Assembly: GCF_002113885.1 (NCBI RefSeq)
Contig: NW_018404943.1
Location: 991,236 to 1,055,235, forward strand
Origin: Mizuhopecten yessoensis
Lineage: Eukaryota
Length of the DNA: 64,000 bases
Direction: 5' to 3'
The notes beneath the pieces are model-generated. The model did no database searches. It was not told the DNA's origin and worked only from the letters and a program-made list of their open reading frames with translations. The translations under genes and the position numbers were made by a program. Numbering within the stretch: position 1 is the first letter of the stretch; the number at the start of each line of letters is the position of its first letter. Of the stretch, positions 17,113 through 41,875 are shown in pieces.

Positions 17113-17681
17113 TCAATGTCTCGTAGGTGGGTAACTATGGTTTAGGCTATACTTATTGTAAGAGTTAAGTGTGTGAATGTTTTGTAACACAGTGTGGTAA
17201 TGATCTATGTCACTTTCTCGGTCCTCCGCAGGACGAGTTGGCACGTCACGGTATTTGCCTTTTGACCCCTCTGATTGTCTTTCCTTTTCCCCACGCCAGC
17301 AGAGAATGTTGTGGTCCCGGGCTTGTAGAACTATGAAGACCACACCAAATAGCAAGATGGCCGACGTGCATAGAATTATCACCCAGACAAAGAAACTCAG
17401 CATATCTGGGTCTAAGAAATTCATGATCAGCTTTCTGCGACAGTACCCGTCCCTGATCTCATATCCCTCACTACACTGAAAACAGTCTTCAACATATGGC
17501 CCTTTACAAGTCCGACAGGCATCATTGCAGGCATGACAGATACCATGTCTCTGGTACTGTGGAGCCCAGCCAGACGAGTTATGGTTTGAGTCCATCAACA
17601 CTGTCTCCATGGTGCCGTAGTAAAACTCCGGACAGCTGGCCACACAGCCGTCACCAAACTTGTAAAATCCTGGACGGCATT
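17113..17681 (-). CDS. FURIN: Furin-like convertase, last exon of the Cys-rich isoform (FU repeats, TM helix, cytoplasmic tail)
   Basis: ttcag|AA phase 1. Encodes ECRPGFYKFGDGCVASCPEFYY...CHACNDACRTCKGP..DCFQC, a hydrophobic segment FFVWVIILCTSAILLFGVVFIVL, and a tail with YRDV and EDRESDID. TGA at 17113-17115. Confidence 0.9.
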
Positions 17682-17952
17682 CTGAAACAGGGTAACCTTT
17701 GTATCAATAATGTGGTACATTTGACAAAACGAAGTTGTCTCCGGATAGTGTTTGACAGTGTCGGGCCTACTTCACATTAAGGTCAGTAGGATTACATCAT
17801 CATAGTCTTTGATACAGGTCATATCTTTACAATCATTTGCATCTCAGGTAATGTGTTAATATTGTTGGGAGGATAAAAATATTGTAACCACATGACTCGA
17901 CTATACATCACGAGAAGCATTGTCACATCTTATTCATGGTAAGTGTACTAAC

Positions 17953-18087
17953 CTATACATATGCCGTGAGAAGTGATGCCAGCACATTTTAAGGGCTCCT
18001 TTTTCTTCACTGGTTGGGAAGTTATGTTGCGGCTTTGAGGATGAGTACCAGTGCCCATGACAACCAGTGTCCATTGTTTTAATTCGG
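17953..18087 (-). CDS. FURIN: Furin-like convertase, P-domain-terminal exon version B
   Basis: ttttaccttccag|CC...G|gttagt, 135 nt, phase 1/1. Encodes (T)ELKQWTLVVMGTGTHPQSRNITSQPVKKKEPLKCAGITSHGICI, matching the LxxWxLxxxGT end of the P domain. Not in the ORF track. Confidence 0.88.
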
Positions 18088-18596
18088 CTGGAAGGTAAAA
18101 AGATGCAATGAAATATTGGGAAGTTGAAAAATTAAAATACGCTTTTAAAATTGAACCTAACTATGGGAGTTATAAATAGATCTTTTTTTTTTAAATTTAC
18201 AAATGAATGAAAAACAAGAACTTTATACACTTATGAGGAAACTCTGAAAGAGGAGGAAAAAAAGCTATTGTCGGCAGGTGAAGTGATTTTCAAGCTTACA
18301 TCTAATTCTCCTGAACTTCAAATGTGTTTTTATATTTTTTTCTTTAACTTCAGATGTGTTCTGATATTGTCTCCAGGTCTAGTGCAGTGTAATTATACCA
18401 TAATAGGTTACAACAGAAAAAGTGCAGCAGTAGCATTGTTTAAATGTATGGAAATCATATTTACTAGTATAACTTGTACTTGTGAATGAAATTGTGTTTA
18501 GTAAGGTAAAATAATAACACGCTTTCTGTTTTAATGAAAGCAAATGCTCAACAAACATCCTTGGTGCATTATAACCAAGGTACGAGATTGGCCTGG

Positions 18597-21500
18597 CAAA
18601 TCTAACACAATATTACACTGAATTGTCCTACAAATCTAACACAATATTACACTGAATTGCCCTACAAATCTAACACAATATTACACTGAATTGTCCTACA
18701 AATCTAACACAATATTACACTGAATTGCCCTACAAATCTAACACAATATTACACTGAATTGTCCTACAAATCTAACACAATATTACACTGAATTGCCCTA
18801 CAAATCTAACACAATATTACACTGAATTGTCCTACAAATCTAACACAATATTACACTGAATTGCCCTACAAATCTAACACAATATAGCATAGAAAAGCAC
18901 AGCAAATCTAACACAATATAACACTGAATTGCCCAACAAACCTAACACAATATAACACTGAATTGCCCTACAAACCTAACACAATATTACACTGAATTGC
19001 CCTACAAATCTAACACAATACAGCATAGAAAAGCACAGCAAATCTAACACAATATTACACTGAATTGCCCTACAAATCTAACACAATATTACATAGACAA
19101 GCACAGCAAATCTAACACAATATTACACTGAATTGCCCAACAAACCTAACACAATATTACACTGAATTGCCCTACAAATCCATCACAATATTACACTGAA
19201 TTGTCCTACAAATCTATCACAATATTACACTGAATTGCCCTACAAATCTAACACAATACAGCATAGAAAAGCACAGCAAATCTAACACAATATTACCCTG
19301 AATTGCCCTACAAATCTTACGCAATATTACCCTACAAATCTAACACAATATAACACTGAATTGCCCTATAAATCTAACACAATATTACACTGAATTGTCC
19401 AACAAATCTATCACAATATTACACTGAATTGCCCTACAAATCTAACACAATATTACACTGAATTGCCCAACAAACCTAACACAATATTACACTGAATTGC
19501 CCTACAAATCTTACACAATATTACCCTGAATTGCCCTACAAATCTTACACAATATTACCCTACAAATCTAACACAATATAACACTGAATTGCCCTATAAA
19601 TCTAACACAATATTACACTGAATTGTCCTACAAATCTATCAAAATATTACACTGAATTGCCCTACAAATCTAACACAATATTACACTGAATTGTCCTACA
19701 AATCTATCACAATCTTACACTGAATTGCCCTACAAATCTAACACAATATTACACTGAATTGTCCTACAAATCTATCACAATATTACACTGAATTGTCCTC
19801 CAAATCTATCACAATATTACACTGAATTGCCCTACAAATCTAACACAATATTACCCTGAATTGCCCTACAAATCTTACACAATATTACACTGAATTGCCC
19901 TACAAATCTAACACAATATAACACTGAATTGCCCTATAAATCTAACACAATATTACACTGAATTGTCCAACAAATCTATCACAATATTACACTGAATTGC
20001 CCAACAAATCTATCACAATATTACACTGAATTGTCCTACAAATCTATCACAATATTACACTGAATTGTCCTACAAATCTATCACAATATTACACTGAATT
20101 GCCCTACAAATCTAACACAATATTACACTAAATTGCCCAACAAATCTATCACAATATTACACTGAATTGCCCAACAAATCTAACAAAATATTACAAAGAC
20201 TGGCCCACAAACCTAACAAAATATTACAAAGACTGGCCCACAAACCTAACACAATATGACATAGACTGGCCCCACAAACCTAACACAATATTACATAGAC
20301 TAACCCAACAAATCTAACACAATATGACATAGACTAACCCAACAAATCTAACACAATATTACATAGACTGGCCCCACAAACCTAACACAATATGACACAG
20401 ACTGGCCCCACAAACCTAACACAATATCACATAGACTAACCCTACAAATCTAACACAATATTACATAGACTAACCCTACAAATCTAACACAATATTACAT
20501 AGACTGGTCCCACAAACCTAACACAATATGACATAGACTGGCCCCACAAACCTAACACAATATGACACAGACTAACCCAACAAATCTAACACAATATTAC
20601 ATAGACTGGCCCCACAAATCTAACACAATATTACATAGACTGGTCCCACAAACCTAACACAATATGACACAGACTGGCCCCACAAACCTAACACAATAAA
20701 AAATAGACTGCCCCCACAAATCTCCCACAATATTACATAGACTGGCCCCACAAACCTAACACAATATTACAGACTGGCCCCACAAACCAAATACAATATT
20801 ACATAGACTAACCCAACAAATCTAACACAATATTACATAGACTGGCCCCACAAATCTAACACAATATGACACAGACTGGCCCCAAAACCCTAACAAAATA
20901 TTACAAAGACTGGCCCCACAAACCAAACACAATATTACACAGACTGGCCCCCAAACCTAACACAATATGACACAGACTGGCCCCACAAACCTAACAAAAT
21001 ATTACACAGACTGGCCCACAAACCTAACACAATATGACATAGACTGGCCCCACAAACCTAACACAATATTACATAGACTGGCTCCAAAAACCTAATACAA
21101 TATCACATAGACTAACACAACAAATCTAATACAATATTACATAGACTTACCCAACAAATCTAACACAATATTACATAGACTAACCCAACAAATCTAACAC
21201 AATATTACATAGACTGGCTCCACAAACCTAACACAATATGACATAGACTAACCCAACAAATCTAACACAATATTACATAAACTAACCCAACAAATCTAAC
21301 ACAATATCACATAGACTAACCCAACAAATCTAACACAATATGACATAGACTAACCCAACAAATCTAACACAATATTACATAGACTGGCCCAACAAATCTA
21401 ACACAATATTACATAGACTAACCCAACAAATCTAACACATTATTACATAGACTAACCCAAAAAATCTAACACAATATTACATAGACTGGCCGCACAAACC

Positions 21501-24112
21501 TAACACAATATTGCATAGACTGACCAAACAAATCTACCACAATATTACATAGACTAACCCAACAAACCTAACACAATATTACATAGGCTAACCCAACAAA
21601 TCTAACACAATATTACGTAGACTGGCCCCACAAATCTAACACAATATGACACAGACTGGCCCCACAAATCTTACACAATATTACATAGACTGGCCCCACA
21701 AATCTAACACAATATTACAGACTGGCCCCACTAACCCAACAAACCTAACACAATATTACATAGACTGACCACACAAACCTAACACAATATTACATAGACT
21801 GGCCCCACAAACCTAACACAATATTACATAGACTGACCAAACAAATCTAACACAATATTACAGACTGGCCCCACTAACCCAACAACCCTAACACAATATT
21901 CCATAGACTAACCCAACAAATCTAACAAAATATTACATAGACTGGCCCCACAAACCTAACACAATATTACAGAGAATGGCCCCACAAACCTAACACAATA
22001 TTACATACAGACTGGCCCCACAAACCTAACACAATATTACATAGACTGGCCCCACAAACCTAACACAATATAACATAGACTGACCCCACAACCCTTACAC
22101 AATATAAACTAGACTGGCACCACAAACCTAACACAATATTACATAGCCTACCCCAACAAATCTAACAAAATATTACATAGACTGGCCCCACAACCCTAAC
22201 ACAATATTACAGAGAATGGCCCCCACAAACCTAACACAATATTACTAACACAATATTACATACAGACTGGCCCCCCAAACCTAACACAATATTACATAGA
22301 CTAACCCTACAAATCTAACACAATATTACATAGACTCGCCCCACAAACCTAACACAATATTATATAGCCTGGCCCCACAAACCTAACACAATATGACACA
22401 GACAGGCCCCACAAACCTAACACAATATACCATAGACTGACCCCACAAACCTTACACAATATAAAATAGACTGGCCCCACAAACCTAACACAATATTACA
22501 TATACTGGCTCCACAAACCTAACACAATATTACATAGACTGGCCCCACAAACCTAACACAATATGACACATACTGGCCCCACAAATCTAACTCAATATTA
22601 CATAGACTGACCACACAAACCTAACACAATATGACCCAGACTGGCCCCACAAATCTAACTCAATATTACATAGACTGACCACACAAACCTAACACAATAT
22701 TACAGAGAATGGCCCCACAAACCTAAGACAATATGACACAGACAGGCTCCACAACCCTAACACAATATTACACAATCTAACACAATATTACATAGACTAA
22801 CCCAACAAACCTAACACAATATGACCCAGACTGGCCCCACAAACCTAACACAATATGACACAGACTGGCCCGACAAATCTAACACAATATGACACAGACT
22901 GGCCCGACAAATCTAACACAATATTACACAGACTAGCCCCACAAATCTAACACAATATGACACAGACTGGCCCCACAAACCTAACACAATATAAAATAGA
23001 CTGGCCCCACAAATCTAACACAATATTACATAGACTGGCCCCACAAACCTAACACAATATAACATAGACCGACCCCACAAACCTAACACAATATTACATA
23101 GACTGGCCCCACAAACCTAACACAACATTTCACAGACTGGCACGACAAACCTTATGGCCCCACAAACTTACCACAACATTACACAGACTGGCCCCACAAA
23201 CCTTATGGCCCTACAAACTTAACACAATATTACATAGACTGGCCCCACAAACCTAACACAATATGACACAGACTGGCCCCACAAACCTAACACAATATTA
23301 CACAGACTGACCCCACAAACTTAACACAATATTACATAGACTGGCCCCACAAACCTAACACAATATTACACAGACTGGCCCCACAAACCTAACACAATAT
23401 GACACAGACTGGCCCCACAAACCTAACACAATATTACACAGACTGGCCCCACAAACCTAACACAATATTACACAGACTGGCCCCACAAACCTAACACAAT
23501 ATTACACAGACTGGCCCCACAAACCTAACACAATATGACACAGACTGGCCCCACAAACCTAACACAATATGACACAGACTGGCCCCACAAACCTAACACA
23601 ATATGACACAGACTGGCCCCACAAACCTAACACAATATGACACAGACTGGCCCCACAAACCTAACACAATATGACACAGACTGGCCCCACAAATCCAACA
23701 CAATATGACACAGACTGGCCCCACAAATCTAACACAATATTACACAGACTGACCCCACAAACTTAACACAATATTACATAGACTGGCCCCACAAATCTAA
23801 CACAATATTACATAGACTGGCCCCACAAACTTAACACAATATTACACAGACTGACCCCACAAACTTAACACAATATTACATAGACTGGCCCCACAAACCT
23901 AACACAATATGACACAGACTGGCCCCACAAACCTAACACAATATGACACAGACTGGCCCCACAAACCTAACACAATATAAAATAGACTGGCCCCACAAAC
24001 CTAACACAATATTACATAGACTGACCACACAAACCTAACACAATATGACATAGACTGGCCCCACAAACCTAACACAATATTATATAGACTGACCCCACAA
24101 ACCTAACACAAT
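18597..24112. repeat. Large minisatellite, 34-bp unit, ~5.5 kb, with domains of variant units
   Basis: Constant AAA(T/C)CTAACACAATATTACA followed by CTGAATTG(T/C)CCTAC (to ~20190), then TAGACTAACCCAAC or TAGACTGGCCCCAC. Confidence 0.97.
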
Positions 24113-25244
24113 AGTACTTGGTAGATGTTAAACCCCTCCAAACACAAGATTTCCCCCTCCACTCCCCAGCAGTATCTTATATAGATTGGCCTCAGGACCC
24201 TGATACTATATTATATGGACTGCCTTTCAGACCTTACACAGACTGGCCTCACAGACCACCACTACATCACTCAATACCAGCATCAGAAGCTAAGTCCTCA
24301 ATAAAGGAGATAATGTGTCTATTGTATGGTATAATGACTGGTCTTGTAGCCATTGCTCCTCCACAATAACAGGCCTGTCCCCTAACAATCTGTCTCCATT
24401 TCATGTCAAACTCATTTCCAGGAGAGGATTGTTGATGTCCAATTAATTTGTCTGAGTAACAATGTGTCTAGGAATAAATGAATTGCGATACCTATTCCTG
24501 ATTTATGTCAAATCGTCCAGTGTACTTTCCTTATACTTATCCGCGCTGAGAGATGTGAATTAATTCTTCATACTGTACTAGCAACATCCAATGACATTGA
24601 ATGAAGGTCACTTACCAAAGTGTAGTAGAATGAAAGAAAGAAGTTTTGTATCCCTGTTTGTATTTGTACTGGTGTATATATCAGTATTTGTACCAATTTG
24701 AACCACCGGTGTTCTTATATATATTGTATTGCAAGCAAAAAACAGGTAGGTTGGAGTTTCCACATTCCTCAACTATTACAGAAATGTCCACCATTTGAAA
24801 AATCTAGCACATCAATTATTTATTCCTATTTGAAATGGAATCATTCAATGAAAATAATGTGGATATACGGTACATGCTATGACGTACAATTCTACATTTT
24901 AGTTCTTGTTTGTATTGTTTCATCATATGACCTGACCCTGGACAAAGCTTGTCAAATGATAAAAACATATGTAGCTTCATGGCAATCCAATGTAACTGTT
25001 ATCTTAAAACATTTTTTTGCTTCAAAATCATGAAATTTATGAATGAATTTCCATAGGAAGATATAACAATAAAAAAAGTAAATATTGAAATAAAAAAATA
25101 CCTTTTTGTACACTAAGGCAGAAGTTGTGAGATGGTTAAATTTTTTTTTTGGAAAACAGCTAGGATCATTTATCTCAATGTTTGAAACTGGAAATAAAGT
25201 TTACAATTACTCATGGATAAGTTTGACCTGAGATAAGATGTACT

Positions 25245-25685
25245 ACTATGGTAATATGATGTACTACCTTGGCAATATGATGTATCACCATGGCAATATG
25301 ATGTATCACCATGGCAATATGATGTGTCACCATGGCAATATAATGTATCACCATGGCAATATGATGTGTCACCATGGCAATATGTTGTATCACCATGGCA
25401 ATATGTTGTACTCCCATGGCAGTACAATGTTTTACCATCGGCAATATGATGTATCACAATGGTGATATGATGTATCACCATGGCAATATGATGTGTCACC
25501 ATGGCAATATGATGACAATATGATGTGTCACCATGGCAATATGATGTATCACCATGGCAATATGTTGTACTTCCATGGCAATACAATGTTTTACCATCAG
25601 CAATATGATGTATCACAATGGCGATATGATGTATTACCATGGCAATATGATATATTACCATGGCAATATGATGTATTATCATGGC
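25245..25685. repeat. Minisatellite, 21-bp unit
   Basis: Unit CCATGGCAATATGATGTATCA; explains the repetitive ORFs on both strands. Confidence 0.93.
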
Positions 25686-26571
25686 TTCTATGGTCAGCTG
25701 TTTATAACCATGGTAATTAAATATTGAATCAAAATTTCATGCAACAAATCATCATGAAGAAACAACTACAATCAAGAACCAAAGCATGACTGTTTGTACT
25801 TTTATATGGATTCATTCATCTACGAGCAAATGACTATAGATATAGAAACAGTTACAGGATATATAAGCGGTTATATCTATACCAATGAATATCATCATAA
25901 CATTTATAATATCATTAATAAGAAGCATACTTATGGCATGTATAGGAGATATATACATTTTTTCATATTTCTTGAATACATCAAAGCTAAACCATTCTAT
26001 AGTAGATATAGATAAATATAGATCAAACTGTGTCACTCAGTGATACAAAAAGAAAACTGCAATAAACATCAGCAGTTAAAAAAAATATAAGTTTACATAA
26101 AATATTTAAAAATAAATAAAAAAAAAAAGAAGATGAAGCTAAAAAGGTTATAGCGGAGTATGGCGAAGGGTCAGAGGTCAAGGGCAGGAAGGGGATCAAG
26201 GTCATTGCCGGCAATGTGCAACTGATATACATACAGATGGATATGTTATTTATAAAATCTAAAAATATTGACTTTTCCTTCACAATGTAGATTCTAACGG
26301 AGAAACTGAACCAGGTAATTTTGACTATTAGCTGACCAAGAAATGATGTTGTCTCAACATGTACAGACACTTCAAACAAGTTTTTGATGATTGTAGCAAA
26401 GTTTAACTTCTAGTCATGTGATAAAAAATGGGGAAAACACACAACATGCACAAAATAAATGTAGGAAAAAAGAATAAAATATAACAATGTGCAACAATGC
26501 AATGATGGAAGCCATGCAGTAGAAACACAGGGATCATCTCACAACTACATTTAGGGAAAAGGCAAGAAACT

Positions 26572-26577
26572 TTTATT
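26572..26577 (-). promoter_or_regulatory. Candidate polyadenylation signal for alternative terminal exon A
   Basis: AATAAA on minus, about 200 nt after the TGA at 26781. Confidence 0.4.
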
Positions 26578-26780
26578 AAAATGTGAGTCCTAGTGATAAT
26601 AATTATAAACTTGTGCAATTTGTACAGGAATATAAGGTCAGCAGACACCTCCCGACAGGTATGGACCCAACATGTGCATTCTCACATTGACAAAACTTCA
26701 GGTGCACTTTATAAACAGTGTTTGAGATGACCCCAAGAAATGAAATAATCTACAAGTGCCAGGCAAAACAAGCCTAAAAC

Positions 26781-27454
26781 TCAGATGACAAAGAAGAAAC
26801 TGAATACAACAGACAGAAGACAATCACAGAGAATGCTACCAGTACAGAAAAGATGGCACATGCCTGTAAGGACAAGGCCAGACAACTCAGACCAGTCACA
26901 AACCTGGTCATGCCTGATGCTTCCAACACTCACAGAGAGGCTAGAGGGCATGCCTGGGGCACAGACTAAGGACAGAAATTGGCATGCCTGGACGGAAAGA
27001 CAGACATGCCCAAGATGGACGGACAGACAGACATGCCTAGGAGTGGTTTCCTTGCCTGCCGTTAGGTTGCCTCTGACCATCCTCATATATTGTAAAGCAG
27101 ACATGTTGTTCCGTTTGGCCAAAGTTTCAAAAATGCACATGTGAGGAGGCTTCAAATTATCATATTTGGGATAAATTGAAGGGGGACGCCAAGGGTACTT
27201 ATTGGGGTAACGGTTATGGTCTCGATCTTTTGGTTTTTGGCGATTCTTCTTTGATGGCATATACTCATAGGGTGTGAAGGAAGATTCGGTGGTAGAAGTG
27301 ACGGAAGGGCGAAGGGGTTTACTTTTGCGGGGTCGGGAATTATTTTTCAAGGGAGTAATCTTTGTGGTAGTTGAGGTGGTGATGGTTGTGCGCAGTGGAT
27401 CCGTTTCTGTGCCATACAAGACCAGGACCCAATCATCTAACTTAGCCGCCCTCA
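26781..27454 (-). CDS. FURIN: Furin-like convertase, alternative P-domain-terminal exon version A (probable terminal exon)
   Basis: ttttgtttgcag|TG phase 1 joins the exon ending at 32824. Encodes (M)RAAKLDDWVLVLYGTETDP, then a Thr/Ser/Pro/Lys-rich stalk and a hydrophobic end LLSVVFSFFFVI-stop. The 3' boundary is less certain because of a possible GC donor at 27056. Confidence 0.8.
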
Positions 27455-29078
27455 CTGCAAACAAAACACATGGACAAAAACACAAGGTATTAGTAGTCAA
27501 GTCACCAACAGGTAGCCCAAGGCAGCCCTACATACAAATCCTGCTGTACCGTATCTTCTGCACTCCCTTACAGTAACACAATAACATTGGGTAAACAATA
27601 GTCAAACATCCATCATTTACCAAGCAAAAATGTATAAAGCTAAAAAATTCACAAATTTCAAAACAGGAGGTTTTTTTATAGGCATAAGGGATAGATGCAT
27701 GTGTATTCCTCGTAAGGGAGGATCCTAACATCTTAAAAAACGTTTCATAATTTTAATTATTTGTACAGATCTTCTAGAAAGGAAAATCAAAGCTGTTGTC
27801 TGGACAAAAGCAGATGTTTTTTACAGTGCTGAAAATACAGTACTTGTAAATATACAAGGCTGGGCTACATTAACAGATTGACATGTTGATGATAACTAGC
27901 TATAATTTAATACTGTAGCTCTGTTACACTGAAATGTTACCCTTGCACATTTTGATAGATTAACCTTTGACCCTGGCACCACTTTGACCTCTACGAACAG
28001 GTTATGTTCTTGGGCAGAACCAGTCCGAGGTCACCCGCGGTGGTAAGGTCAAATCAGAAATCTTTTCACATCCATGCCTGGTTCACTGTTCTTAGAACAC
28101 AAATAACAATTGAAGGACTATGCAATAAGCTTTTAACTGTTTCTTAAAATTTCAGCTTTTCAAACATACCAAATTATTTTTCTGAATTCAATACAGGTAA
28201 ATAATAAAATGTACAGAATTCTCAAACTTAACCATATGTGATAAATTCCAACATCATTTTATTATGAAAAAAAATCTGCAGTAAAATACCAAGTCAAGAT
28301 ACCAATTTAAATCACATTATTAGCTATTAATTTTTCATTCAGTAAGATTATCATTTTAGTCAATCTTATGATATTTTTTTCTCAGGTAAATTAAATCTTT
28401 CTACTTCAAGTATACATACATCATTTTGTATTTCAAAAGAGAAAGAAAACATCAGGCTACGGCTCATTAGTGTTAGTTGTTAATATAAGTTATTTGTTCT
28501 GGTGCTGAAGCGATGTGCAATGCATGCAAGGACACCAAGGAAGGGAGGTAAGCAGGAGTCGGGACTCATTTGAAGGCAAATCAAAATAAAACAACATATT
28601 TCATTAAAACTAAAATCTAGTAATTTCAGAACATAAAAGTCCGATTCAATGTTGTTTTTCCAGATACAAATTCACAAGCTAAGTAACTGAATAAAATAAA
28701 AAGTGAAAATAAAATATATTCAAATTGATCTTTTTATCATTTTTTTTTTCCAACCAAGAATTATCAAATAAAAATCTTCCTCTGTAGAAATAACCCATTT
28801 TAACAGCACTTTTGTTGTTGAAATGTTACATGTGGATGATAATGGAGGATGGTATAAAAATCAATGTTCAAAAAGACATTTACATTCAATGTGGAAAAGT
28901 GAATTTATCTCATAACTACCCTGTTATCAGTAGCACAACACCCACCCATAAGTTGTGTTAGTAACACCAAGAGGTGCTATGATTGATTACAGGTGTCCAT
29001 TGTTTCAAGTGTAATATCACAACTAGGACAACTTCACAGCATCACAACCTTTTAAGTACAATGTGATGTCATATAAAG

Positions 29079-30255
29079 AACAAGAGGCCCAGAGGACTGA
29101 TATCCGGGGAAGTTTATGCAATCATAGCTGTATATTTTCATTCAGAGTATATAATATTGTAAATATTTCCCTGTATCAGACTCTGTCACTTTGATCCAAG
29201 GATGCTTATTAGCAATAATATATGTACTGGTTGAGAACCATAAACATGTATAATATAGTTGTAGGGTTAGGATCACATCATTTCTAATAATGACCTGAGA
29301 ATAAGTCACTATAGGGGCAGTGCCAGATCCTTGCACTAATCTTGGTAGCATCTTGCATTATTTCAATCATGCCCAGTAATAATAGCCTGTGAATGGTTAT
29401 GTGGTGGGGATCTTAACAATTTTCCAAAGATATGATCCAAGGACTGAAAAAAAGTCTGCACTAGTGGTCTACATATTTCTTAAATATCATGTCTCTAGAC
29501 CTTATGATTCTTCAAATAATAATATTTTGACATATTTGACCTCTATGACTTTAAAGTAAGTGATGGTTTTTGACATGTGGAAATTTTATCACTCCGTCCA
29601 AGGTATCTCGAGGCAAAATATCAGAAACCCGAGCCTCATGGAACTTTTTGGGCCCATTATTGCTTAATGATGTTAACCTTCAATCATGGCCAGTGCTCAA
29701 AGTTGACCTTTGACCTAAACACTATGTATAATAATAAAAAAAGATTCAGTCTAGACTTCATGGTCCTTTAAAAAGCATTACTTGAAGTTTTATCATAGTC
29801 ACCCCTGTGACCTTGAAAGGTCAAGGTCGTTGATATGAGCAAACTCAAGAGAACCCCATGCCAGGTACCTACTGGCTAAATATCAGGATCCTGGACCTTA
29901 TGGAACTTAGGAACAAGATTCTTAATTTGTATATCCGCGACAGCCTGTGTTAACCTTTGACCTGGGTCTTGCTCAAAGTTGACCTTAGACTTAAGCACCA
30001 TATTAGAAAATTAGCAAATTACTGCTACTCTTCATATCCTACTTATCATGGCTGTATACCTTATGGTCATTAGAAATGTGTCTCTAAGTTTTTAACATAT
30101 CTGAACCCTGTAGGTCAAGGTCATTGTTATGAGGAAACCTTATAGTATTCCATCCAAGGGTACCCGTACATGGACCCTGGCTCTTTCAGTTTTCAAGAAG
30201 AAGTGTTCAAAAGGAAAATATGCTCAGTCATATTTTGTGGCAGGTGAGCTCAAAA
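29079..30255 (+). mobile_element. Degenerate Helentron/HINE-like element with internal TGACCTT-rich repeats
   Basis: Starts AACAAGAGGCCC and ends CAGGTGAGCTCAAAA. An internal duplicated block (AAAGTTGACCTT at ~29700 and ~29976) is present. Confidence 0.55.
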
Positions 30256-31880
30256 TTCAACAATATGATACCTTTGTCATAAGAATGAAATAGTCTGACA
30301 CCATGTATTAGAATTCAATGGTATGAAACTTGGGTATATACTTTCATTGTATGAATCTTTTGACATACCAGTGAAATGATGTTAAGCCTAGATGTATATG
30401 ATGTGGAGCACTGGTGTTTAAGCTTATGGTATGAAGTCCTGATTTACAAATTTATGAAACAATTTTTCTTTTTTTTTGCATAAAATTGTATGGGGTGATT
30501 CATTCAACATTGTTGTGCAATGGTAAATATAGCCCAGACATTTACAATTTTATGACGTTAAGCCCTGACGTATAAGCTTATGGTATGAAGGCTCTGAAAG
30601 CATGCACATGGAATGGTACGAGGGAGGTTATGAAGTATGAAAACCTTACCTTGGACAACTGGCCAATCACAATGGTCATCAGTTAAGTGACCGAAGGTCC
30701 GCTGAGAAACGCACCAACTAGAAACTCTCATTTCTAGGTCAAACTCCGTTTTATAGGACAGTTACAAATAGCGTCTGATGCGAACGGTCAGACAAAGCAT
30801 CAGCATAATCCTAATGTCTGCTTTCAACACAATGCTTATAGGAAGGATACCAATGAATTATATGAGTGAGTGAAACTGATCAAGGATGAATGGGTGAACA
30901 TAAACCACTAGGAAGGTTCCCTTTTGATAAAACAGGTTGGAAAACTTTTTTAATTTTTTAATTTTGTTATCATGTAAATAAGTTAAATCAATTCTGCAGA
31001 AATTTAAATAAACGAAAAAATTTGCATACATAAACTAACTGACAAGATTGAAAACATATATTAAAGAAGAGAAGCCAACGAAAGCTGTCCACTGGAACAG
31101 AGGTCAACCAAGGTCAAACATGCCAAACACATACACATGCTTCTAAATCACCAGGTAAAAATACAGTATTCAGAAAACAGTTGAATAATCAAATATAAAA
31201 CTGTGTTAGTTTTCACATCAAACAATAATGTCAGACACATGCATGTGGGCATGCTACATTTCCAAATGTATCTTTTAATGTGAAACATAAAAAGCAAGAC
31301 TTTAAAATGAAAATTCTACAGCATGAAAATATACCGTAAACAAAACAAAAAGGATGAAACTTAAATTGCCAAAAAAAGACAATAAGCAAGCAATTTCGCA
31401 ACTACTTTTAGAGGATACCCTTGTTTTGTGGACGTACCTGACTTGTTATAATATATAGGGATGTAGGCTTCAAATTACATGTATAAAGCAGGGTCTCAAG
31501 GATATTCAGTAGTTATTTTTGGAATTGTTTTTTTTACTTAGTTGGTAGTGATGATGTGTTCTCGTCTCCATCATCACTACTTTGACTCAAATGTTTGAAC
31601 CATTGCACACAGGGTAACTTTTCAAAGGTGTCTAGAAATGTGCAGGGGCTTCAAAACTTATCTAACATTGACCAATTAATGATTTTAGGAAAAAGTTTTT
31701 TTCAAAATGAACATGGTTTGGTTTCAATTTTATTTCCAATTCAATAACATTGGTTCTACTACAAATTAAATGCTAGTCTGCTAATGATTTGGGAACAAGT
31801 ACAGGAGAACTTAATACCATGTCTGTTAACAGTGTCAGCTGGCTTGGAACCCTGATCTATTACAGTCAGGGACATGCATT

Positions 31881-32010
31881 AATTTTGAGAAAGGTTGTTT
31901 CTAAATGAACTGTGTTTGAACACTATAGCTAGCACTGGACATGCAGTAATTTTGAGAAAGGTTGTTTCTAAATGAACTGTGTTTGAACACTATAGCTAGC
32001 ACTGGACATG
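31881..32010. repeat. Tandem duplication of ~67 bp
   Basis: AATTTTGAGAAAGGTTGTTTCTAAATGAACTGTGTTTGAACACTATAGCTAGCACTGGACATG is present twice. Confidence 0.85.
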
Positions 32011-32259
32011 AAGTGATTTTGGAAATGGCTCTATCTTGAGAAGAACATGAACTTGAATCGTTGCTGAATATTTTATAATGATTTACAAAAGGTTGTTTCA
32101 AAATATGAAGAGAATTTAAGCTATCCAAAGCTTATGATATTTTATGATGGATTTTCCCCAAATGAGCAGGACATGAACCCATATATCTATATAACATAGA
32201 TTTACAGACCTTGACCTTTAACTGAGATTCATGACAGTTTTCCATTATTCAATCTTGTA

Positions 32260-32350
32260 TTAACTCATTCACCTCTGACAACACATTTGAACCCTTCTTA
32301 TTCAAAGGCTGGAATAGTCCATCATGAAATTTCAGGGGTGAATGGGTCTT
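32260..32350. mobile_element. TTAA-type MITE, family B copy 3
   Basis: TTAA-CTCATTCACCTCTGA...TTCAGGGGTGAATGGG; collinear with 14619-14710. Confidence 0.7.
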
Positions 32351-32823
32351 TGAAGGACCAGAAAGAAAACAATGGTTTAATGTGGATATTCATTAATATA
32401 ACTGATCAGAATTACTCATAAATCTAAGTCATCCAGTTTTTAATATTATTTTTCAGAAACGAAGAGGAATGTGATTGATAATCATTTACTTTGTGATTAG
32501 AGATTTGATTTTAAAGTTTAGATATATTTTAGATAGGTGTCACATTAAGGCAGTTTCAAGTAAAAGCTTGCATTGTACAAAGATAGCAGTAAAATTGTGA
32601 AGGAAACTTTTAAGCAAATCAGAACTGAAGTGGAAATGAAAGTCAAACGAAAATCAAATCACTAGGAAATAAGGGAGACAGTCAACTATAGGAGACTGTG
32701 AAAGCTTGGTACATGTATTGCTGCATATTGGTAATGTTTAAAAGATCAGACACTGGAAACTTAGAGAAAGCAAAGCCGACAGAGAACTCAAACAACAGAC
32801 ATTGTATATATCTTGTGACTTAC

Positions 32824-33128
32824 TGGCACTGCCGCCATTTTCGATCTCCAATGTCCAGGTGCCTTTGGCGTACTCGCCCCAGTTGTGGGTGGTCATGAAC
32901 GCCCAGTTGTTAAACCCGTCACGTGACACGTCCCTCTGTCGTCGTGCCAACAGGGTTGAGCGTGTGCCCATGGGAGACCTGAGGTATATTGAGATCTCCC
33001 CCCTCCTGATGGCACACAGGGTGATCCTGGCCTGAACGTGCTCCAGGTATTTTACCTGATTTACAGTTCGAATACACCCATCTGTGTGAAGGGGCACACT
33101 AATTTTACTGTTAGCTGGAACTGGACGA
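32824..33128 (-). CDS. FURIN: Furin-like convertase, P-domain exon
   Basis: 305 nt, phases 2/1. Encodes YLEHVQARITL..RRGEISIYLRSPMGTRSTLL..GFNNWAFMTTHNWGE..GTWTLEIEN. Confidence 0.96.
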
Positions 33129-34231
33129 CTGAAATAAATCAAGTTTAGAAGTTTTATAATACCATATACGGCAGCATTCTAAAGATAAGCATTACCAGTT
33201 ATCAAAATATCAACAACAAGAGCATCAGCATTAATGAAGTGATCTAAACACTCAAAGTTTTAGCTAATGGCGGAGGGTAACACTGCATCAGGGTTTAATT
33301 TGAAGAAGAGTTCCATTCAAAAGACTTTCTTTTGACTTGGAGTATTCTCCCTTCTATATAGAAGATGAAGCAACCAAAAGGTATGTTTCTGACTTAGAGT
33401 AACTTCCCCTGTCAAATTATTCATAGCCTTTTTGTCCCATTAATTTGAGACTCATTTTGCTACTGTAAATATAGTTCCAGAATGGTAAAAATGAATAGAA
33501 ATGAATAAACTCCAGTCAAACCGTGATCTTTCTCTAAACTAGCCCCAGAATAATCTGGATCTATGTCTAAACCACCCTCAGTCTATTAGTGATACCTGTA
33601 TAAATCAGTCCAAGACTAATCTGGATCTTTCTCTGCATAAGCTTTCGTATGTCATTCCAGCATTTCCTCTTATGAGTCTAAGTATAACAACCCAGTGACC
33701 TGTCTAAACTTTGTCTTCTCTCCAGAAACAGGCATTGTGTTATTGATCTTATATGTAAATCCCATTAAAAAACATCCTGTTCAATCCAGCTTCTCCACAG
33801 TCCTCAGTCAGCTATCTCTTAATGTGTGTTATTAACATAATATGTTGTTGTTCTTGACAAATTATTATAAATATAATATTAAAACTGAACAGTTTCTTTT
33901 TTATTCCTTCATGTCATTCTCAATTACCATTCAATCACTCACCTGACCAATGCTACTGTACAACATTTTCTCAACTATCAAGAAACGCATGTGTGAATAT
34001 GCATTTGGCATGATAGTTGTTTGTCTGAATAGAATCAGACTGTTGATCGTTTTGAGTCAAACTCTGTAATATGTTGCACCAAACTGATTATGTTACTGTT
34101 ACCAGGTAATACAGATCTGACCATACACCACGATGTGTAATACTTCAGTACGATATGTTACCCCACTTTCCTGATTTATATCTACATCTGTTAGATGTTA
34201 GATGTTTATCCCAGGTAGGATATACACTTAC

Positions 34232-34346
34232 TTTCGTTCCTGTAAACGGATTTCACATATATTTTGTGGCGGCACTGTGGTCCAGTTTTTGGCTAATCTC
34301 ACCATGGCACCAGCATCCATCAAACCAAAACCAAAGGAATGACTTA
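34232..34346 (-). CDS. FURIN: Furin-like convertase exon (end of catalytic domain)
   Basis: 115 nt. Encodes (V)SHSFGFGLMDAGAMVRLAKNWTTVPPQNIC; canonical splice sites. Confidence 0.95.
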
Positions 34347-34802
34347 CTGCAGAAAATAAAGCCAGGAAGGGTTTCATAACATGGTACTGTAGACAGGCTT
34401 GATACTTTATTTCATTTTATGTTATACACCAAGATACTGCCAATCAAGGTAATTAGAACAAGGATTGTCACACAAAGACTATAATTGGGTCTTTTGGCAA
34501 AGTGTGCTTCATGAACACCAAATTATAAATTACATCAAAATTTGGCTAAAGCAATTAAATTCCAATGATTACTGGAGTTTGTTGATAATATGTAATAAAG
34601 TAATATCGAAATAATCATTCCATATCTTTAAATAAGGTCAAGAAAACCACATTTACCACAGAAAATCACAAAAACCTTGAAGTGAATGGATATAAGAATC
34701 ACTTTCATACTCTAATGAAATAATCAAACGAGAACAACCACACATGTAATGTTGTTTGAAGTATGTTTAACCACTGCTGCGGACTGGGTCCAGATGACCT
34801 AC

Positions 34803-34906
34803 CACTTCTGTTGACTCCATTGTAGGTCCAATCATCTGCCCTCAGATTTCCCCTTTTGGCCGTCATTACAACAATATGCTGTAAATCTCTCCAAGTTAAA
34901 GAAGGG
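34803..34906 (-). CDS. FURIN: Furin-like convertase exon
   Basis: 104 nt. Encodes (N)PSLTWRDLQHIVVMTA..DWTYNGVNRS. Confidence 0.95.
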
Positions 34907-35208
34907 CTGAAATATACAATGTATGGCAACATGAGGAAATTTGTTAGAGTTACCCCCCTTACATTAGAATTGGCCTCCTTGCACTAAAATTCATCATTTC
35001 GAAAATGTTGGATTGTAACTTTTCCTTAATGTTGTCAGAAAAAAAAATCCCGAAAATAATGCAGGATGACTTTATTCTGACACTTACATGAAAGTATGAC
35101 TTATGTCTGAAGTTTAATATTATTTTCTTTTAAAGTTGTCAGCAATAGGTTTGAAAAATCCCAGTTCCAATATGGAGCCATGTCACCATCAAGTCCAGCA
35201 TTACTTAC

Positions 35209-35309
35209 TTCGCCTGTAAAGCCAAGGCACATATTCCAGCAGCTAGCGGGGCACTAGCCGAGGTGCCTGTATGGGACTCAGTACAGGTCTTCCTTAGGTC
35301 AGTAGTTAC
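35209..35309 (-). CDS. FURIN: Furin-like convertase exon, catalytic Ser
   Basis: 101 nt. Encodes [33 protein letters not shown]. Confidence 0.97.
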
Positions 35310-36186
35310 CTGCAAATCAACAATCACACAATTTAAACATCAAGATTAAAATCACTATATTTGTACGATTATATTATTACATCATTTATCAGTGAATCTT
35401 GATTTAATCTTAAATCTTTCGAGACATTCAGATGTAGCCCTTCAGGTAACAATATCTTTTAGTAAAGTAAAAATACCAAATTACATGTGAAATGAGAAAA
35501 TGAAACTAAGACACTTCTCCATGCATTTTAATGCCCCCATCATTTTATTGGGAAGGGGAAAGGGAGTGGCGTATATATGTTTATACATTTTGCATGTTTC
35601 CCATGTCCGTTTCATCCCAAGGCAGCAGCGTCATTTCTGGGGATTTTGATCAAACTTTCATCCAAAAGTCAAGTAAGAGAGAGGGTACTTTGAATGAATT
35701 TGTATTTCAGAGTTCCAAGGTCAAGGATATAAGGTCACCATTACTATTTATAATTTTCTTTAAAAATTGACAGTAATCTGTATGGGAGCAGTGACACTCA
35801 TTTACCTTGGACTAGGGGCAGACATTTTCGAGTTTATTAAATCTTACATTGGTCACCTTGACCTGTTCATGGCGTAAAACACACTGCCACTTATACATTT
35901 CAGAAACCTGCTTGATAAAGCAAAGAACTGATAACTACAGAAACAAATATCCATTAATTGTTTAGTGGAGGGAAATAATAAGTCACTGTGACCGACATGT
36001 ATCTATAGTGTGTAACACACATGCATTCAACATAACAACTTTTATGAACCTGTATGGAAATGCGAAGAAACTAAACGAAATTAAACGAAGCAAAAATATA
36101 TAGGTTAGTGTAGCCTGATTGTAATATGCAACACACCTTCCAAAAGAATAAATTGCATTTATTAGTATCTTATTGTCATAACTTAC

Positions 36187-36399
36187 GATTTGTTTTTCGC
36201 CACTAGAACCACTGCTATAGGTGGTGGCGAGTGTGGAAGAACACGCCTCTGAATACCATGGAATGTTGCCGTTTTCTGTGGCACTGCTGATGGAGATGGT
36301 ATGGATGCTGTTGGTATAACCATCACAGTTACAGCTGTCGAAGTCACGCCCCCCATTACCCGACGCCCACACAAAGATGGAGCCCAGTCCACCGCGGCC
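36187..36399 (-). CDS. FURIN: Furin-like convertase exon, oxyanion Asn
   Basis: 213 nt. Encodes [32 protein letters not shown]...[18 protein letters not shown]; the [11 protein letters not shown] and [11 protein letters not shown] segments are furin-type. Confidence 0.97.
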
Positions 36400-38742
36400 C
36401 TATACAAACAGAAAATATAAATATTCAATGGATGCATCGCTGTCAGTAATCGTCATATTTTATTATGCAAAATTAACATGTATGAAATTTAATCGAGCGG
36501 CTTTCCACTGAAAACTGTACTAGATATAATATGTTGAAAGTATCATAGATAAACTCATTGTAGTGCTTTCAGTTAAGAGATACAATTACAAACAGTCACA
36601 TTTTCATGCAAAATTCATTAAAAAAGTTTTATGTTTAATCATGTCGATCTTTTCTTTCAGTGTTGAAGTTCCCGACTTTTTGTTTTAATAGAAATATCGG
36701 TATATCACTTGTGAAATGCTAATCTAAGCTAATATAAATTTTACCCAAATCTCAATACTACATTTTAAAATAGTGTGATTGAGTATTAGCCAAAATGTTA
36801 TTTCAATTCACATTCATTGTAAAAACCTGAATAGCGTGAGTGGTTTTTGTGAAATTATTGCCTTACATCGTGATATGATCAGAACTACAGGAAGGCACGC
36901 CAATCCCTGGTATTCCCTATAATATCCCGGTAATCAACTGTGCATACAATTCCTAAGATAATCATTACTGATAATGGGCAGCAAGACTTAAATTCAGCTC
37001 TTCTTTTCTACCAATCATGAGAAATGGGATAAAAGCATAGAGCTTTCATACATAAACTGCATTTATAATTAATCAGAAAACTTCTATAAGTAAATATTTC
37101 TTGATGTTTCCATGATGAGAATAAATATGCAATTGGTAAGACTTAATTGGGTCCATTTAGATTTCTACACTGTGACAATTTCAGCAACCCGAAATGCAGT
37201 GCATATTTGAATACCTATAGGGTATTTCCTCTAATTCCTAGCCTGATTACAAAATGATTGCAATCCAATGTTATCCTAAAACCAACATAGTTTTCCTCCA
37301 CAGCAATAATCCACTTAATGCTGCAGAAAATTCTAAAGAAGCAACAAAATTCTTAGTAATAAAACGTAACCATGCAACAAAGCCTTCGGAGTAACTGCTG
37401 TTTTAAATCTTTTACTGTCAAAACAAAAACCCTGGTCAGTACATTTCCACTACAAGACATTTGCAATCCCATTTAAATATCTAAGCGGCTCCCCAGCTTT
37501 GTTCATGTGCTACGAGCATTGGTATTAAACTGCCACAAATGTCTCCCGGTAATTCCAGCTCCAGGCTTGCCTCAGTCAACAGAAGTGTCAGGTTAAACTG
37601 ACGGCAGTATTTGTACTTTTCTTGGTTTGTTGTTTCCGTCTTTTTTTACTAAGACCAAACAGAACTATATCTATAAACACCTTTTCAGGTCGATGAGACG
37701 AAAGGACAATACTTAAAATCACCAGGAAAGTGACATTACTGCCAGTGACATTAGTTTTATATTGTACAGGACAAAACATATTAAGAAGAAGAAACTTGGA
37801 ATATTTATTGGCCAATCTGGGCAAATAAAAGGGGAATTGAATGTTAAGCTGCGGGGTGGGCGACATACGTGGTCGGCTTAAACTATCGCAATGTTATTGA
37901 TGGTCTGTGACCTATATATATAAAGTACATCTGATTGATGGTGATGTACTCTATTCTCATGCTGTTATGCTTTGTCTGGTTAGCAATACATATTTATAGG
38001 AGCAGATCATCCTATTATATGTGGAAAAACATCTGTGAAATGCAACTGCATGTCTGTGGTTAAAAGTATATCAGACAATAGAATATTTCCCTAAAAAAAA
38101 AAAAAACTGGTATTAACGATGGGAAGGGGATCACTTTGAGGCATTTTTTTAAGAACCATCAAACTTAGGGGTATAAAATGATTATAAACTATCCAATACT
38201 GGACCTACACTTGTGCTGCCGGTGAAAGGTTTGCCTTAAGACTGGCACCAAAAACCCTGTCACAAAGACCCTCAGTGGGATCAGTTAATATTCCGTCCAC
38301 AACACATCTGACAGTGTCTGTCCGGCGCCTAGCTATTGCACAATGGACAGGGCTGAAATCCTAGCAAACTTTACCGTATTACCGATTTACATAAGTACGA
38401 CATTTCAAAGACATACAAATCACTTTAAGTGAGGCCTTTTCTCCTTATACATAGCTACAGAGTGCAAGGTGAATGAGGAGAAGACCTGTATGAAAGAAAC
38501 CAACAGTGTGGAAATGTAGCAAGTAAGAACGTGGTAACATTATAGAAATGGAATGGAGAGCAACAGATCCACTGAAATAAATCAGTTTTTACTGTCTCGT
38601 GATCACAAACGTAATTTTTAAAATAGAAATAACATGGTGAACACTCATTTTTGGAAGGCTACCTAGGCACAAACTAAGTTTTGCATGGTTATCATCAAGT
38701 TGAGACAGGAAACAATGCTTATTTTCAGAAATGTTTTGTTAC

Positions 38743-38915
38743 CAAATTGATGCCGTCGTGGAAGGCTTTCCTAGCCAGGGTGGCAGGTCCATCAACTGTG
38801 CGCCCGTCATCATCAGGGCCCCAGCTAGCGCTGTACACGTGGATGTGATCAGGGTTCAAACTCAGGGATTGAGCTTCTACTGAGTCCGTCACATCACCAT
38901 CCAACATCCGCACAC
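38743..38915 (-). CDS. FURIN: Furin-like convertase exon
   Basis: 173 nt. Encodes (G)VRMLDGDVTDSVEAQSL..HVYSASWGPDDDGRTVDGP. Confidence 0.97.
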
Positions 38916-41599
38916 CTAGAACGGAAATAACGTACAAAATACCAAAAAATGGTCACTTCTTACACCGTCTTTATTTTGATTTAACAATCTCATCGGATTC
39001 AGTCACAATTTTATCATTTTAAATAAATAAATAAAGTAATTTTGCATCTATTTTTTATGGATCCCATTCTTACATTCAAATGTCACACTATTATACCACC
39101 AGCTTAAAATGGACACGAGAAGAAATAAATTAATCACTGTTGTGCCACCGTCCGAGACCCATATAATCAGTTTTTGATGTTCAGGTCTCACTTTGGACAT
39201 AATAAAAGCAGTCCCCCCCTGATTGTGGATTCTCCGTAACACAGGGCTGATTGATTCTATTATCCACCTCATCAAAGGACAATAGCTGTGTAAGCCAGAC
39301 CTCCCTAAATACCCTATAGTTGACTTGTCATGGACACAGGTTCAAAGCTTTTGTACGTGGAGATAACACACATACCCAGTGAAAGACCCAACTGTATCAG
39401 GACAGGTAGCTGATTAATATGTGACAAGCCACATCAATAGAAGACAAGGACCCCCACTTCAGACGTATCATGTGACGTCTTCCTTGGTAGGTACCAGTGG
39501 CCCGTTTCACCTGGCTGTAAGGCCAGGGCACGAAGGCGTGGCTAATTACAGCCGGTTCCTGTTCGGTTACACATCTTATGACAGGTAGCACTGTCTACAG
39601 GTGAATCACCTGGTCCGTGGGACTCGCCCTACGCCAGACACCTTACTTGCAAGTGTCTCAATGACCATCAACCCGCAATTTATCAATGGGACGGTTGTTT
39701 TGTAGTTAGTGTAAAGTACAGAATATAGAGTTTATTTTAGACAAATGAGATTATATCAACGACAGGGCACAACTTATTAGGCTAAACCTGTGATCTTTGC
39801 CATGTACACAACACTTATGTTAAAAAAAAATCATAGCACAGAAATATTTTTTATCATTAACCTGTTATAAACTTGATAATGATATCTCCACCCTATGACA
39901 GGATTTTTTTGCCCTGTGACACCTTTTTTTTTTTCAATGAAATCTCTGCTTGAAATCCTTTTGAGGGTTACCAGGTATCCAATTATTCTGGCATTCCCCC
40001 TGAAATTGAGGGACAGAACTCTTTATATAATCCTGAAGAAGTGCAAACAATCCCCAATTTGCTGACTTACTTACACATAGTCAAATGAATTACCGTGAGG
40101 ATGAATCACGTCTGTTGTACTTTCCCCATTACTTTCTGTATGTAAATGAATATCATTTTTATTTCTCCACTTGTGTGTTAATCTCTCCGCCAGTGTCTAT
40201 ACAGATTTAGAAACTTTGATTTAGGTCACTGGTCGATACAACAGATAAACTGCATCTATCAGTGATGATTTTTTACACTAAAACTTGTAACTGCTTAGAA
40301 CGGTACAGCAGAGTTGATAGGCAGAGATATGGACAGCTATATAACATTGAGTTAATCACCCAACGCTTCCATCAACTAGCCTCACACCCAACACCCAACC
40401 GTCCTTCTCATGCCAATCAGACCTATTCTAATCTAAAAATTAGCAACAATATAAATATCAAGTGGCGCTTCGTGCTTTGTTGGCAAGACAAAAACAAGGA
40501 AAACATGTACAAAACCCTCCCTCATAAATCTCAGCACTACTTCTGCGAAGACAGGTGCTTTTTGGGTGTAAAACCACAAAAACCGGCTACCCCGGCTGTA
40601 GTGTTGTGTACAACTCCAACTCCAGCTTTTGATGTTTGGGCTATATCTCAAATCTAAACATAGGCTATATTTGAATGTCTTACTGTCTTATCTCCTCTCC
40701 CCACCTTTCTGGTGGAAGAGAGGGAAAATTGTTGTGGAGTCAATGTGTTTGCTGATTTCTCCAAGGATTACCCCCTATCACACATTCCGGGGCCAATTAC
40801 CACCCGGTGTTAACATGGCAATAGGCTGTCATATTTTCCATGCATATTTAAAACATAATATTCTTTTACACACAAATAGGAGCATTCGTGAAATTTATCT
40901 CTCCTGTCAGGTAAACAAAATATGAAAGTATCAAGTATTATGCAACTTCATCTTCAGACGCATCTTAATGCCTTTCTACCATGGCATACGCAAGTGTAAA
41001 CCAATGTTCCATAACAGTTTTATCTCGACTCTAAATATAACACACTGCACACAATGTTTACTGTAGTAAACCTTTAAGTGCAGAGAATATAATATCTTTT
41101 CATTAGTGCAACATAGAAAAGGTAATTTGCTCCATAAAAATATGCATACTTGTAATTTAATTAAGACAAGGATGTTATAAATGTGCTAATACAAATGCTG
41201 TCTATCTGGGCAATTAATTTTTGACTAAGCCAAAGTGTATACAAGAAATGAACATCAATGATCTTGTTCTCAGGGGATTATCTATTGAAGGCAAATTTTA
41301 ATTAAAATATCAATTTTTTTAGCAAGTTTATATTTGGGGTATTACAAAAATAATTACACTGAAAGTTCCACAGACAGACGGCACCACTGGAAGTTTTTAT
41401 TACCAATAGGTGAGAGGTTAGATCTGATGCAAACTAAAACAATTCTACACATTTACCACAAATATTGATGACTAATACCAATACACAATTACAGCAATAA
41501 TGCTTGCTTTCAATGCTACTCCCATACTAAAGGGATTGAATGCCAATCAACTCATTACGTAAACTATCCTTACCACCAATACTGTGGTGCCGCTCATGG

Positions 41600-41875
41600 A
41601 CAATACTGGCACTAAAATCCACTCTTGGTTAATACTGGCACTAAATTCCACTCTTGGTTAATACTGGCACTAAATTCCACTCTTGGACATTACTGGCACT
41701 AAATTCCACTCTTGGTTAATACTGGCACTAAATTCCACTCTTGGACATTACTGGCACTAAATTTCACTCTCGGACAATACTGGCACTAAATTCCACTCTC
41801 GGACAATACTGGCAGTAAATGCCACTCTTGGACAATACTGGCACTAAATTCCACTCTTGGAAAATACTGGCATTG
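41600..41875. repeat. Minisatellite, 29-bp unit, ~9 copies
   Basis: Unit AATACTGGCACTAAATTCCACTCTTGG(AC/TT). Confidence 0.9.

Follow-up and report, generated by a model that had tools for sequence, protein, structure and literature searches.

Yeast Kex2 carries a Ser/Thr-rich region between its P domain and its transmembrane (TM) segment, and the Drosophila Fur1 gene gives rise to the isoforms Dfur1, Dfur1-CRR and Dfur1-X. Alternative C-termini are a known theme among the proprotein convertases, with Dfur1, C. elegans bli-4, vertebrate PC5A/B and PACE4 as examples (references in PMC2121096), and PC5A and PC5B are sorted differently (PMC2121096). C-terminal isoforms have long served to explain differences in sorting in the convertase field, and the last P-domain residues are held to be indispensable for folding: PACE4C, which is made without the last 11 of them, stays in the endoplasmic reticulum (ER) as an inactive zymogen (PMC13765174), so these residues must be regarded as essential. 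Here we describe a furin-type gene of the scallop Mizuhopecten yessoensis in which splicing takes place just before the last strand of the P domain. It lies in a 64,000-nt stretch of genomic DNA (NCBI RefSeq assembly GCF_002113885.1, contig NW_018404943.1, positions 991,236 to 1,055,235; hereafter the window, whose numbering is used throughout). Two exons, A and B1, can follow its P-domain exon (P exon), and each begins with a copy of the capping strand. We consider it likely that exon A is an optional, strand-duplicating in-frame cassette with a weak but conserved GC donor, which possibly serves as a terminal exon as well.

A phase-1 intron before the last P-domain strand

Judged from its domains, the gene, which is encoded on the minus strand, is a furin-type proprotein convertase (furin/kexin type, subtilase S8B). 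The catalytic domain was read from separate exon pieces, two of which match Pfam Peptidase_S8, each exceeding the cut-off; the subtilase motifs DDGI and WASGNGG are seen in the open reading frame (ORF) pieces from ~61265 to 34705, and the 5′ end of the gene lies outside the window. The P domain follows directly after the catalytic domain, as in furin/kexin convertases. The P exon covers positions 1–71 of the 86 of Pfam P_proprotein (E 4e-24) and aligns with residues 357–448 of the 471 of the furin crystal chain 1p8j (E 6e-29), so that the last strand of the domain must be supplied by the next exon; the remaining 23 residues of the furin chain include TKFTLVLYGT, as read in vertebrate furin fragments. 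The translation of the P exon (...NWGEYAKGTWTLEIENGGSA) has the C-terminal end WTLEIENGGSA, followed by one extra base (A, 32824) before gtaagt. The phase-1 end at 32824, before the last strand, that the first-pass annotation of this DNA had placed here was thereby confirmed in both coordinate and phase.

The same phase-1 intron is present in ~50 related genomic ORFs, and a phase-1 end of the P exon was also read at four other loci, those at which its end could be determined (Dreissena, L005 and two assemblies of one taxon). A phase-1 intron before the last P-domain strand is found in essentially all mollusc-like genomic ORFs, in which reading on through T|GTAAG or T|GTGAG yields 'CK' or 'CE'. 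Vertebrate furin fragments end after NYG, likewise just upstream of the last strand. From these comparisons, the position of the intron looks ancient.

Two exons supply the capping strand

Two phase-1 acceptors, both with polypyrimidine tracts, can complete the codon that is opened by the P exon. At 27454 (...ttgcag|TG) the split codon A+TG gives Met, followed by RAAKLDDWVLVLYGT, and at 18087 (...ttccag|CC) A+CC gives Thr, followed by ELKQWTLVVMGT. The first-pass annotation had named these two acceptors and the LxxWxLxxxGT motif behind each, and both stand: when a loose version of this pattern was scanned in all six frames of the window, it occurred only twice, exactly at the starts of exons A and B1. 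Searches of Pfam and the PDB with the strand peptides alone (21–44 residues) gave no match, the peptides being too short, and the exon starts were therefore compared as hhalign profiles. The profiles of the first 18–20 residues, built from 12 taxa for A and 6 taxa for B1, matched with a probability of 96.8% (E 2.7e-10) over 18 columns, with the common pattern L-K-x-W-x-L-V-x-x-G-T-x-x-H/x-P-Q. Copy A retains the LYGT of vertebrate furin, and copy B reads M/R-G-T in 6/6 taxa; past the ~18-residue strand stretch the two exons are unrelated. The similarity fits a partial duplication of the exon start, with shared structural constraint contributing too.

Both routes are represented in RNA. All sampled words of exon A were found in 18 runs from 7 studies, and most of these runs comprise 70–400 million letters, too few for a locus of an animal genome to be assembled from DNA. 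Contigs of four runs, each from a different study (X1, X4, X5 and X7), were placed on 27000–32990. The junction 32824>27454 (P>A), with GT..AG ends, is spanned by contigs of X1, X4 and X5, that is, in three studies. Searches of protein collections for spliced fragments from other species returned only unspliced genomic-type ORFs apart from a Dreissena model (described below), so the RNA proof of P>A comes from this species. The junction 32824>18087 (P>B1) is seen in two studies as loose ends at 32824 that equal the exact start of B1, over 30 nt in X1 and 255 nt in X7. Thus, both of the junctions that the first-pass annotation had predicted occur in RNA contigs. In the X7 contigs P>B1 was seen and P>A was not detected, and in X5 P>A is prominent; exon A inclusion appears to vary between samples.

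Route B runs from the P exon through B1 to B2 and, as had been proposed from the first reading, would end in a Cys-rich region, a single TM segment and a cytosolic tail with a tyrosine motif (YRDV) and an acidic cluster (EDRESDID), the features of a furin-type C-terminus. In Pfam, B1 and B2 have weak matches to GF_recep_IV and VSP only. Exon B2 is 51–55% identical to the Dreissena and Mactra loci. This route would be the default, and its predicted product is a classical type-I membrane furin.

Exon A is conserved among bivalves

Exon A encodes a strand cap, a Thr/Pro/Lys-rich disordered stalk and a conserved helix-loop-helix motif. A search with its reading frame returned ~20 homologous ORFs of 146–281 residues and no long proteins. 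The homologues share the same layout: (R/K)LKDWVLVLYGT, a run of Thr, a basic low-complexity stretch that is rich in Tyr, Asn and Pro and varies greatly in length, and a block of the form H-x-C-(I/L/V)-(F/Y)-E-T-L-A-(K/R)...N-x-S...Q-Y, which reads HMCIFETLAK...QY. The residues H, C, E, T and A of this motif (H-x-C-x-x-E-T-x-A) are invariant in 22 aligned sequences, namely the window and 21 homologues. An alignment-based AlphaFold2 model of exon A is disordered apart from helices at 107–114 and 119–129, with a predicted local distance difference test score (pLDDT) of 84–89; no Pfam family matches the helical block. The stalk is probably O-glycosylated; this glycosylation, like any role of the helical module, is an inference.

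The DNA of 11 further taxa was compared with exon A of the window. The reading frame is open for 133–192 codons in the 12 taxa, and in 8/8 taxa measured the exon has a clean acceptor and a length divisible by 3, from 399 to 576 nt. The ratio of non-synonymous to synonymous substitution rates (dN/dS) is 0.12 for one close pair, at a dS of 1.4, and 0.25 for a second. Four other genomes share the arrangement of the window: L001/L002, L004 (Dreissena polymorpha) and L012 (Mactra antiquata) have the P exon, A and B1 in this order, followed by B2 in Dreissena and Mactra, and L006 has the order A, B1 and no P-exon match within its flank. Conservation and purifying selection of exon A, on which the first proposal of two usable exons had depended, are thus borne out by syntenic homologues and low dN/dS, and on this comparative evidence we take exon A to be an old, bivalve-conserved exon under purifying selection.

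The same data bear on whether the inclusion of exon A has any protein product. It could be non-productive, a regulated poison or decoy exon or mere noise that lowers furin output without protein function, as its weak donor and the long unconserved read-through tail in this species (both described below) might suggest, together with its absence from the main furin models of the Dreissena and Mactra annotations. We consider this highly improbable given a frame that has stayed open in 12 taxa, the dN/dS values, the invariant residues in the predicted helical module, and the fact that inclusion of A with splicing to B1 preserves the frame. In the GenBank annotations of Dreissena and Mactra, both of which were inspected, exon A is a separate 'hypothetical protein' nested in the furin gene model; it appears to be mis-annotated in both, unrecognized as part of furin. 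We found no published account of exon A in the literature on mollusc furin isoforms, and an earlier description in Lymnaea or Aplysia cDNA work is possible.

A conserved GC donor and probable splicing from A to B1

Exon A ends at a GC-type 5′ splice site, AG|GCAAG, which has GC at +1/+2 and otherwise follows the consensus, and whose seven positions are identical in 11/12 taxa. Nearby synonymous sites vary: just upstream of the donor, the codons for invariant His, Cys, Glu, Thr, Leu, Ala and Lys change freely in their third positions, and the residue preceding the donor Gly is Ala, Glu, Pro or Ser, yet its codon always ends in A. 'G-K' stands directly after the helical block in all homologues, with divergence beyond, and from the Gly and Lys codon usage within exon A the chance of GGC-AAG is ~0.13 per lineage. 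The twelfth taxon has TAG|GTAAC 15 nt upstream of the GC-donor position, in the same phase. Invariance at the nucleotide level amid varying synonymous sites is the signature of a phase-1 5′ splice site of the GC-AG class. Alternatively spliced sites are enriched in GC donors (PMC2490688).

Two kinds of data connect exon A to B1. The Dreissena protein KAH3837626.1 reads ...KKDLTS-A-ELTEWKLVLMGT (MSTRQYYQMMKKDLTS-A-ELTEWKLVLMGTKTHPQ), in which exon A passes at the GC donor into B1 through the split codon G+CT; the equivalent join in the window would be G+CC, also Ala and in frame. One contig of X1 that carries the P>A join spans exactly 27056–27454 plus 30 nt of the P exon and so ends at the donor base. 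Use of the GC donor in scallop is a prediction. In addition, one X5 contig matches exon A as far as 27323 and then goes over into B1, of which it contains the first 29 nt; in this form the initial 132 nt of A would serve as an in-frame cassette ahead of B1. The internal donor used in this join (AAAA|gtaaac) may be species-specific; an apparent conservation of GTAAAC in four taxa was rejected, as the codon alignment shows that the positions are not homologous.

The first-pass annotation had expected A and B1 to be mutually exclusive. The conserved phase-1 GC donor, the Dreissena A>B1 model and the X5 join 27323>18087 speak against this expectation. Strict exclusivity could be retained in its classical form if the GC donor spliced to B2 (17681) and skipped B1, which would leave one strand copy per mRNA and keep the TM tail. 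Exons A (399 nt) and B1 (135 nt) both begin and end in phase 1, the split codon G+AA formed with the B2 acceptor would keep the frame, and the need of A for a strand of its own would be accounted for; no such junction was seen, however, both of the A-to-downstream joins that were seen or annotated lead to B1, and without B1 the Cys-rich region would lose its first two cysteines. We hold this arrangement to be quite improbable.

Read-through of the donor and the case for a terminal exon

Several observations weigh against an A cassette that splices on to B1. Among the contigs and loose ends listed for this species there is no 27056>18087 junction, and the join of the short form of A to B1 comes from one contig of one run. 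The Dreissena join comes from a deposited gene model whose evidence basis is unknown, and its final exon after B1 is an odd 11-codon exon (VAIFLGRLFAW, stop; L004 14006–14040) in place of the Cys-rich exon, which may be one more minor alternative end or else an artefact of the annotation. Strictly, a cassette that precedes B1 could do without a strand of its own, and the presence of one fits an exon that arose, or is used, to bypass route B. Finally, contigs of X4, X5 and X7 overrun the GC donor by up to ~1.4 kb (at least 0.8–1.4 kb in X4 and X5); these runs cover introns as well, and hence the read-through could be pre-mRNA rather than a terminal exon, and the data are contigs, whose depths give no isoform ratios.

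Part of this would be expected if A and B1 were strictly alternative, with A a terminal exon whose product is a convertase, soluble or stalked, that lacks the Cys-rich region, the TM segment and the tail, and with the A>B1 joins as splicing noise. The capping strand of A is needed only if B1 is bypassed, the X5 read-through contig has a depth of 11.5 against 0–4 for the upstream intron, and in five other taxa a stop lies within 4–17 codons of the donor. Coding alone, however, does not explain the nucleotide invariance of AG|GCAAG, the joins from A to B1 in Dreissena and from 27323 in X5 point the other way, and the sole AATAAA within 2 kb of the donor, at 26577, is itself overrun by X4 and X5 contigs, in which RNA ends are not visible. 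Moreover, the read-through tail is conserved neither in length nor in sequence, running for 91 codons here. Strict alternation therefore seems to us unlikely. A glycosylphosphatidylinositol (GPI)-anchored, tail-less form was likewise considered and rejected: the hydrophobic read-through tail is not conserved, and other taxa stop soon past the donor. The view of route A in the first-pass annotation, as a form with no Cys-rich domain or sorting tail, does not hold as it was put, since isoforms that contain A can still carry the Cys-rich, TM and tail exons; a truncated protein with A as its only C-terminal exon is possible, because contigs overrun the GC donor.

Model for exon A

We favour an optional in-frame cassette that works as follows, with the translation and function of each isoform remaining predictions. 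The conserved phase-1 intron would leave the P domain open before its last strand, and either of two downstream exons could follow the P exon. Whenever A follows, its own capping strand would complete the domain, after which A would add the Thr/Pro/Lys-rich stalk and a helix-loop-helix module of 28 residues, in which one Cys is invariant and an N-glycosylation sequon is present. Being frame-neutral (399 nt), A would splice through its weak GC donor in frame to B1, so that its inclusion would insert 133 residues, or 44 by way of the internal donor, between the P domain and the Cys-rich/TM/tail region. The A+B1 protein would be left with a second, redundant copy of the strand. Where the weak donor is unused, the protein would end soon after the helical module, as a soluble enzyme that has lost everything from the Cys-rich region through the TM segment to the sorting tail.

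A further idea, which we find improbable, is that the A+B1 isoform is a functional convertase with two competing final strands, separated by a glycosylated linker and a helix hairpin, either of which could close the β-sandwich. If so, the competing strands would form a built-in conformational switch, or permit an intermolecular strand swap, that tunes folding, zymogen activation or oligomerization, and how much of the enzyme carries one strand and how much carries two would be determined by the conserved weak GC donor.

Table 1 Features of the scallop convertase gene in window coordinates
Feature	Position	Strand	Basis
Upstream introns and catalytic-domain exons of the same convertase gene	33129..61265	-	ORF list; Pfam Peptidase_S8 on two pieces
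Catalytic exon pieces	~61265-61119, 42065-41916, 38937-38725, 36372-35983, 34932-34705	-	ORF list
P-domain exon, without the last β-strand of the P domain	32824..33128	-	Phase-1 end A|gtaagt; Pfam; furin PDB alignment
Exon A, long form, 399 nt, 133 codons, phase 1 to 1	27056..27454	-	32824>27454 in X1, X4, X5; homologues; dN/dS; X1 contig end at 27056
Strand copy A, LDDWVLVLYGT, canonical LYGT type	27408..27440	-	Sequence read; profile comparison
Internal alternative donor AAAA|gtaaac, cut 27323|27322, phase 1; 132-nt (44-codon) short cassette	27317..27326	-	X5 contig
Conserved motif HMCIFETLAKRNNMSALQYMRMVRGNLTA, N-x-S sequon, two predicted helices	27057..27143	-	Alignment; AlphaFold2
GC-type 5′ splice site AG|GCAAG, cut 27056|27055, phase 1	27050..27057	-	Invariant in 11/12 taxa; used in Dreissena model KAH3837626.1
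Read-through ORF beyond the GC donor, stop at 26783-26781 after 91 codons	26781..27055	-	Contigs X4, X5, X7
Exon B1, 135 nt, phase 1 to 1, strand copy B and start of Cys-rich region	17953..18087	-	Loose ends X1, X7; orthologues L001, L004, L006, L012, L014
Strand copy B, LKQWTLVVMGT	18050..18082	-	Start of exon B1
Exon B2, Cys-rich repeats, TM, cytosolic tail, stop	17113..17681	-	Sequence read
B2 TM segment	17394-17326	-	Sequence read
B2 tail YRDV	17253-17242	-	Sequence read
B2 acidic EDRESDID	17226-17203	-	Sequence read

Repeats around the exons

A 34-nt minisatellite of ~163 copies (5.5 kb, 18597–24117) fills most of the intron between A and B1 and ends ~500 nt upstream of the B1 acceptor; together with a second array of a 21/42-nt unit at 25233–25685 it makes up about two thirds of this intron. 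Further minisatellites with 29–72-nt units lie in furin introns and in the downstream flank, at 1009–2017, 6983–7972, 9059–9448, 41593–41883, 44277–45080, 45987–47566, 52453–54421, 56661–57224 and 58186–60644, the array at 58–60 kb yielding long spurious plus-strand ORFs. In the intron between the P exon and exon A, an ~80-nt element (32262–32344) reaches a summed contig depth of >5000 in X1 and X4 and of ~500–800 in X5 and X7. Its many different flanks mark it as a dispersed repeat, abundant and shared by many transcripts; there is a related copy near 16121–16264, and Rfam gave no match for the element. At 29549–30110, contigs of X1 and X4 skip 560 nt with 7 other letters in between, which is probably an insertion/deletion polymorphism of an intronic element and not splicing.

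Comparison with known convertases

The scallop gene resembles Dfur1, bli-4 and PC5A/PC5B in that the prodomain, catalytic domain and P domain are common to the isoforms and the choice of 3′ exons decides on Cys-rich repeats, TM anchor and sorting tail. It would differ from them in its switch point, which lies before the last P-domain strand, in the second copy of that strand within an optional exon, and in the nature of exon A, which appears to be a frame-neutral cassette with a conserved GC donor; the likeness to Dfur1 and bli-4 is taken here as one of isoform theme. The closest precedent for splicing inside the P domain is PACE4C, of the human PCSK6 isoforms PACE4C and PACE4CS, where the last 11 residues of the domain differ. 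PACE4C loses the strand, whereas both scallop routes restore LxxWxLxxxGT, and both products should therefore be able to fold.

Exons A and B1 recall tandem mutually exclusive homologous exons in their neighbouring homologous starts, their identical entry phase and their position as alternative partners of one donor. Exons of that class are homologous over their whole length, similar in size and never found in the same mRNA; A and B1, by contrast, are homologous over the first 18 or so residues only, measure 399 and 135 nt, and are included together in the X5 contig and in KAH3837626.1. Exon A is also reminiscent of Kex2, as it places a Thr-rich, presumably O-glycosylated spacer directly after the P domain. 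Unlike in Kex2, an alternative exon encodes the spacer, which can thus be left out, and a conserved helical module without a Pfam match comes after it.

The gene offers a natural case in which splicing precedes an indispensable strand and the difficulty appears to have been solved by duplicating the strand, in a comparison that samples both major bivalve lineages (scallop versus Dreissena and Mactra). Its two natural strand variants (LYGT and MGT) on one catalytic core provide material for testing how the cap affects stability, pH and calcium dependence. The analysis also defines a conserved helical module that had not been annotated, corrects the two genome annotations inspected, and adds a clean example of a GC donor conserved at the nucleotide level among distant taxa. 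Compared with the systems described above, the bivalve gene would thus be distinct in three ways: an optional exon restores the strand, its use as a cassette leaves two copies, and its GC donor has been kept at the nucleotide level.

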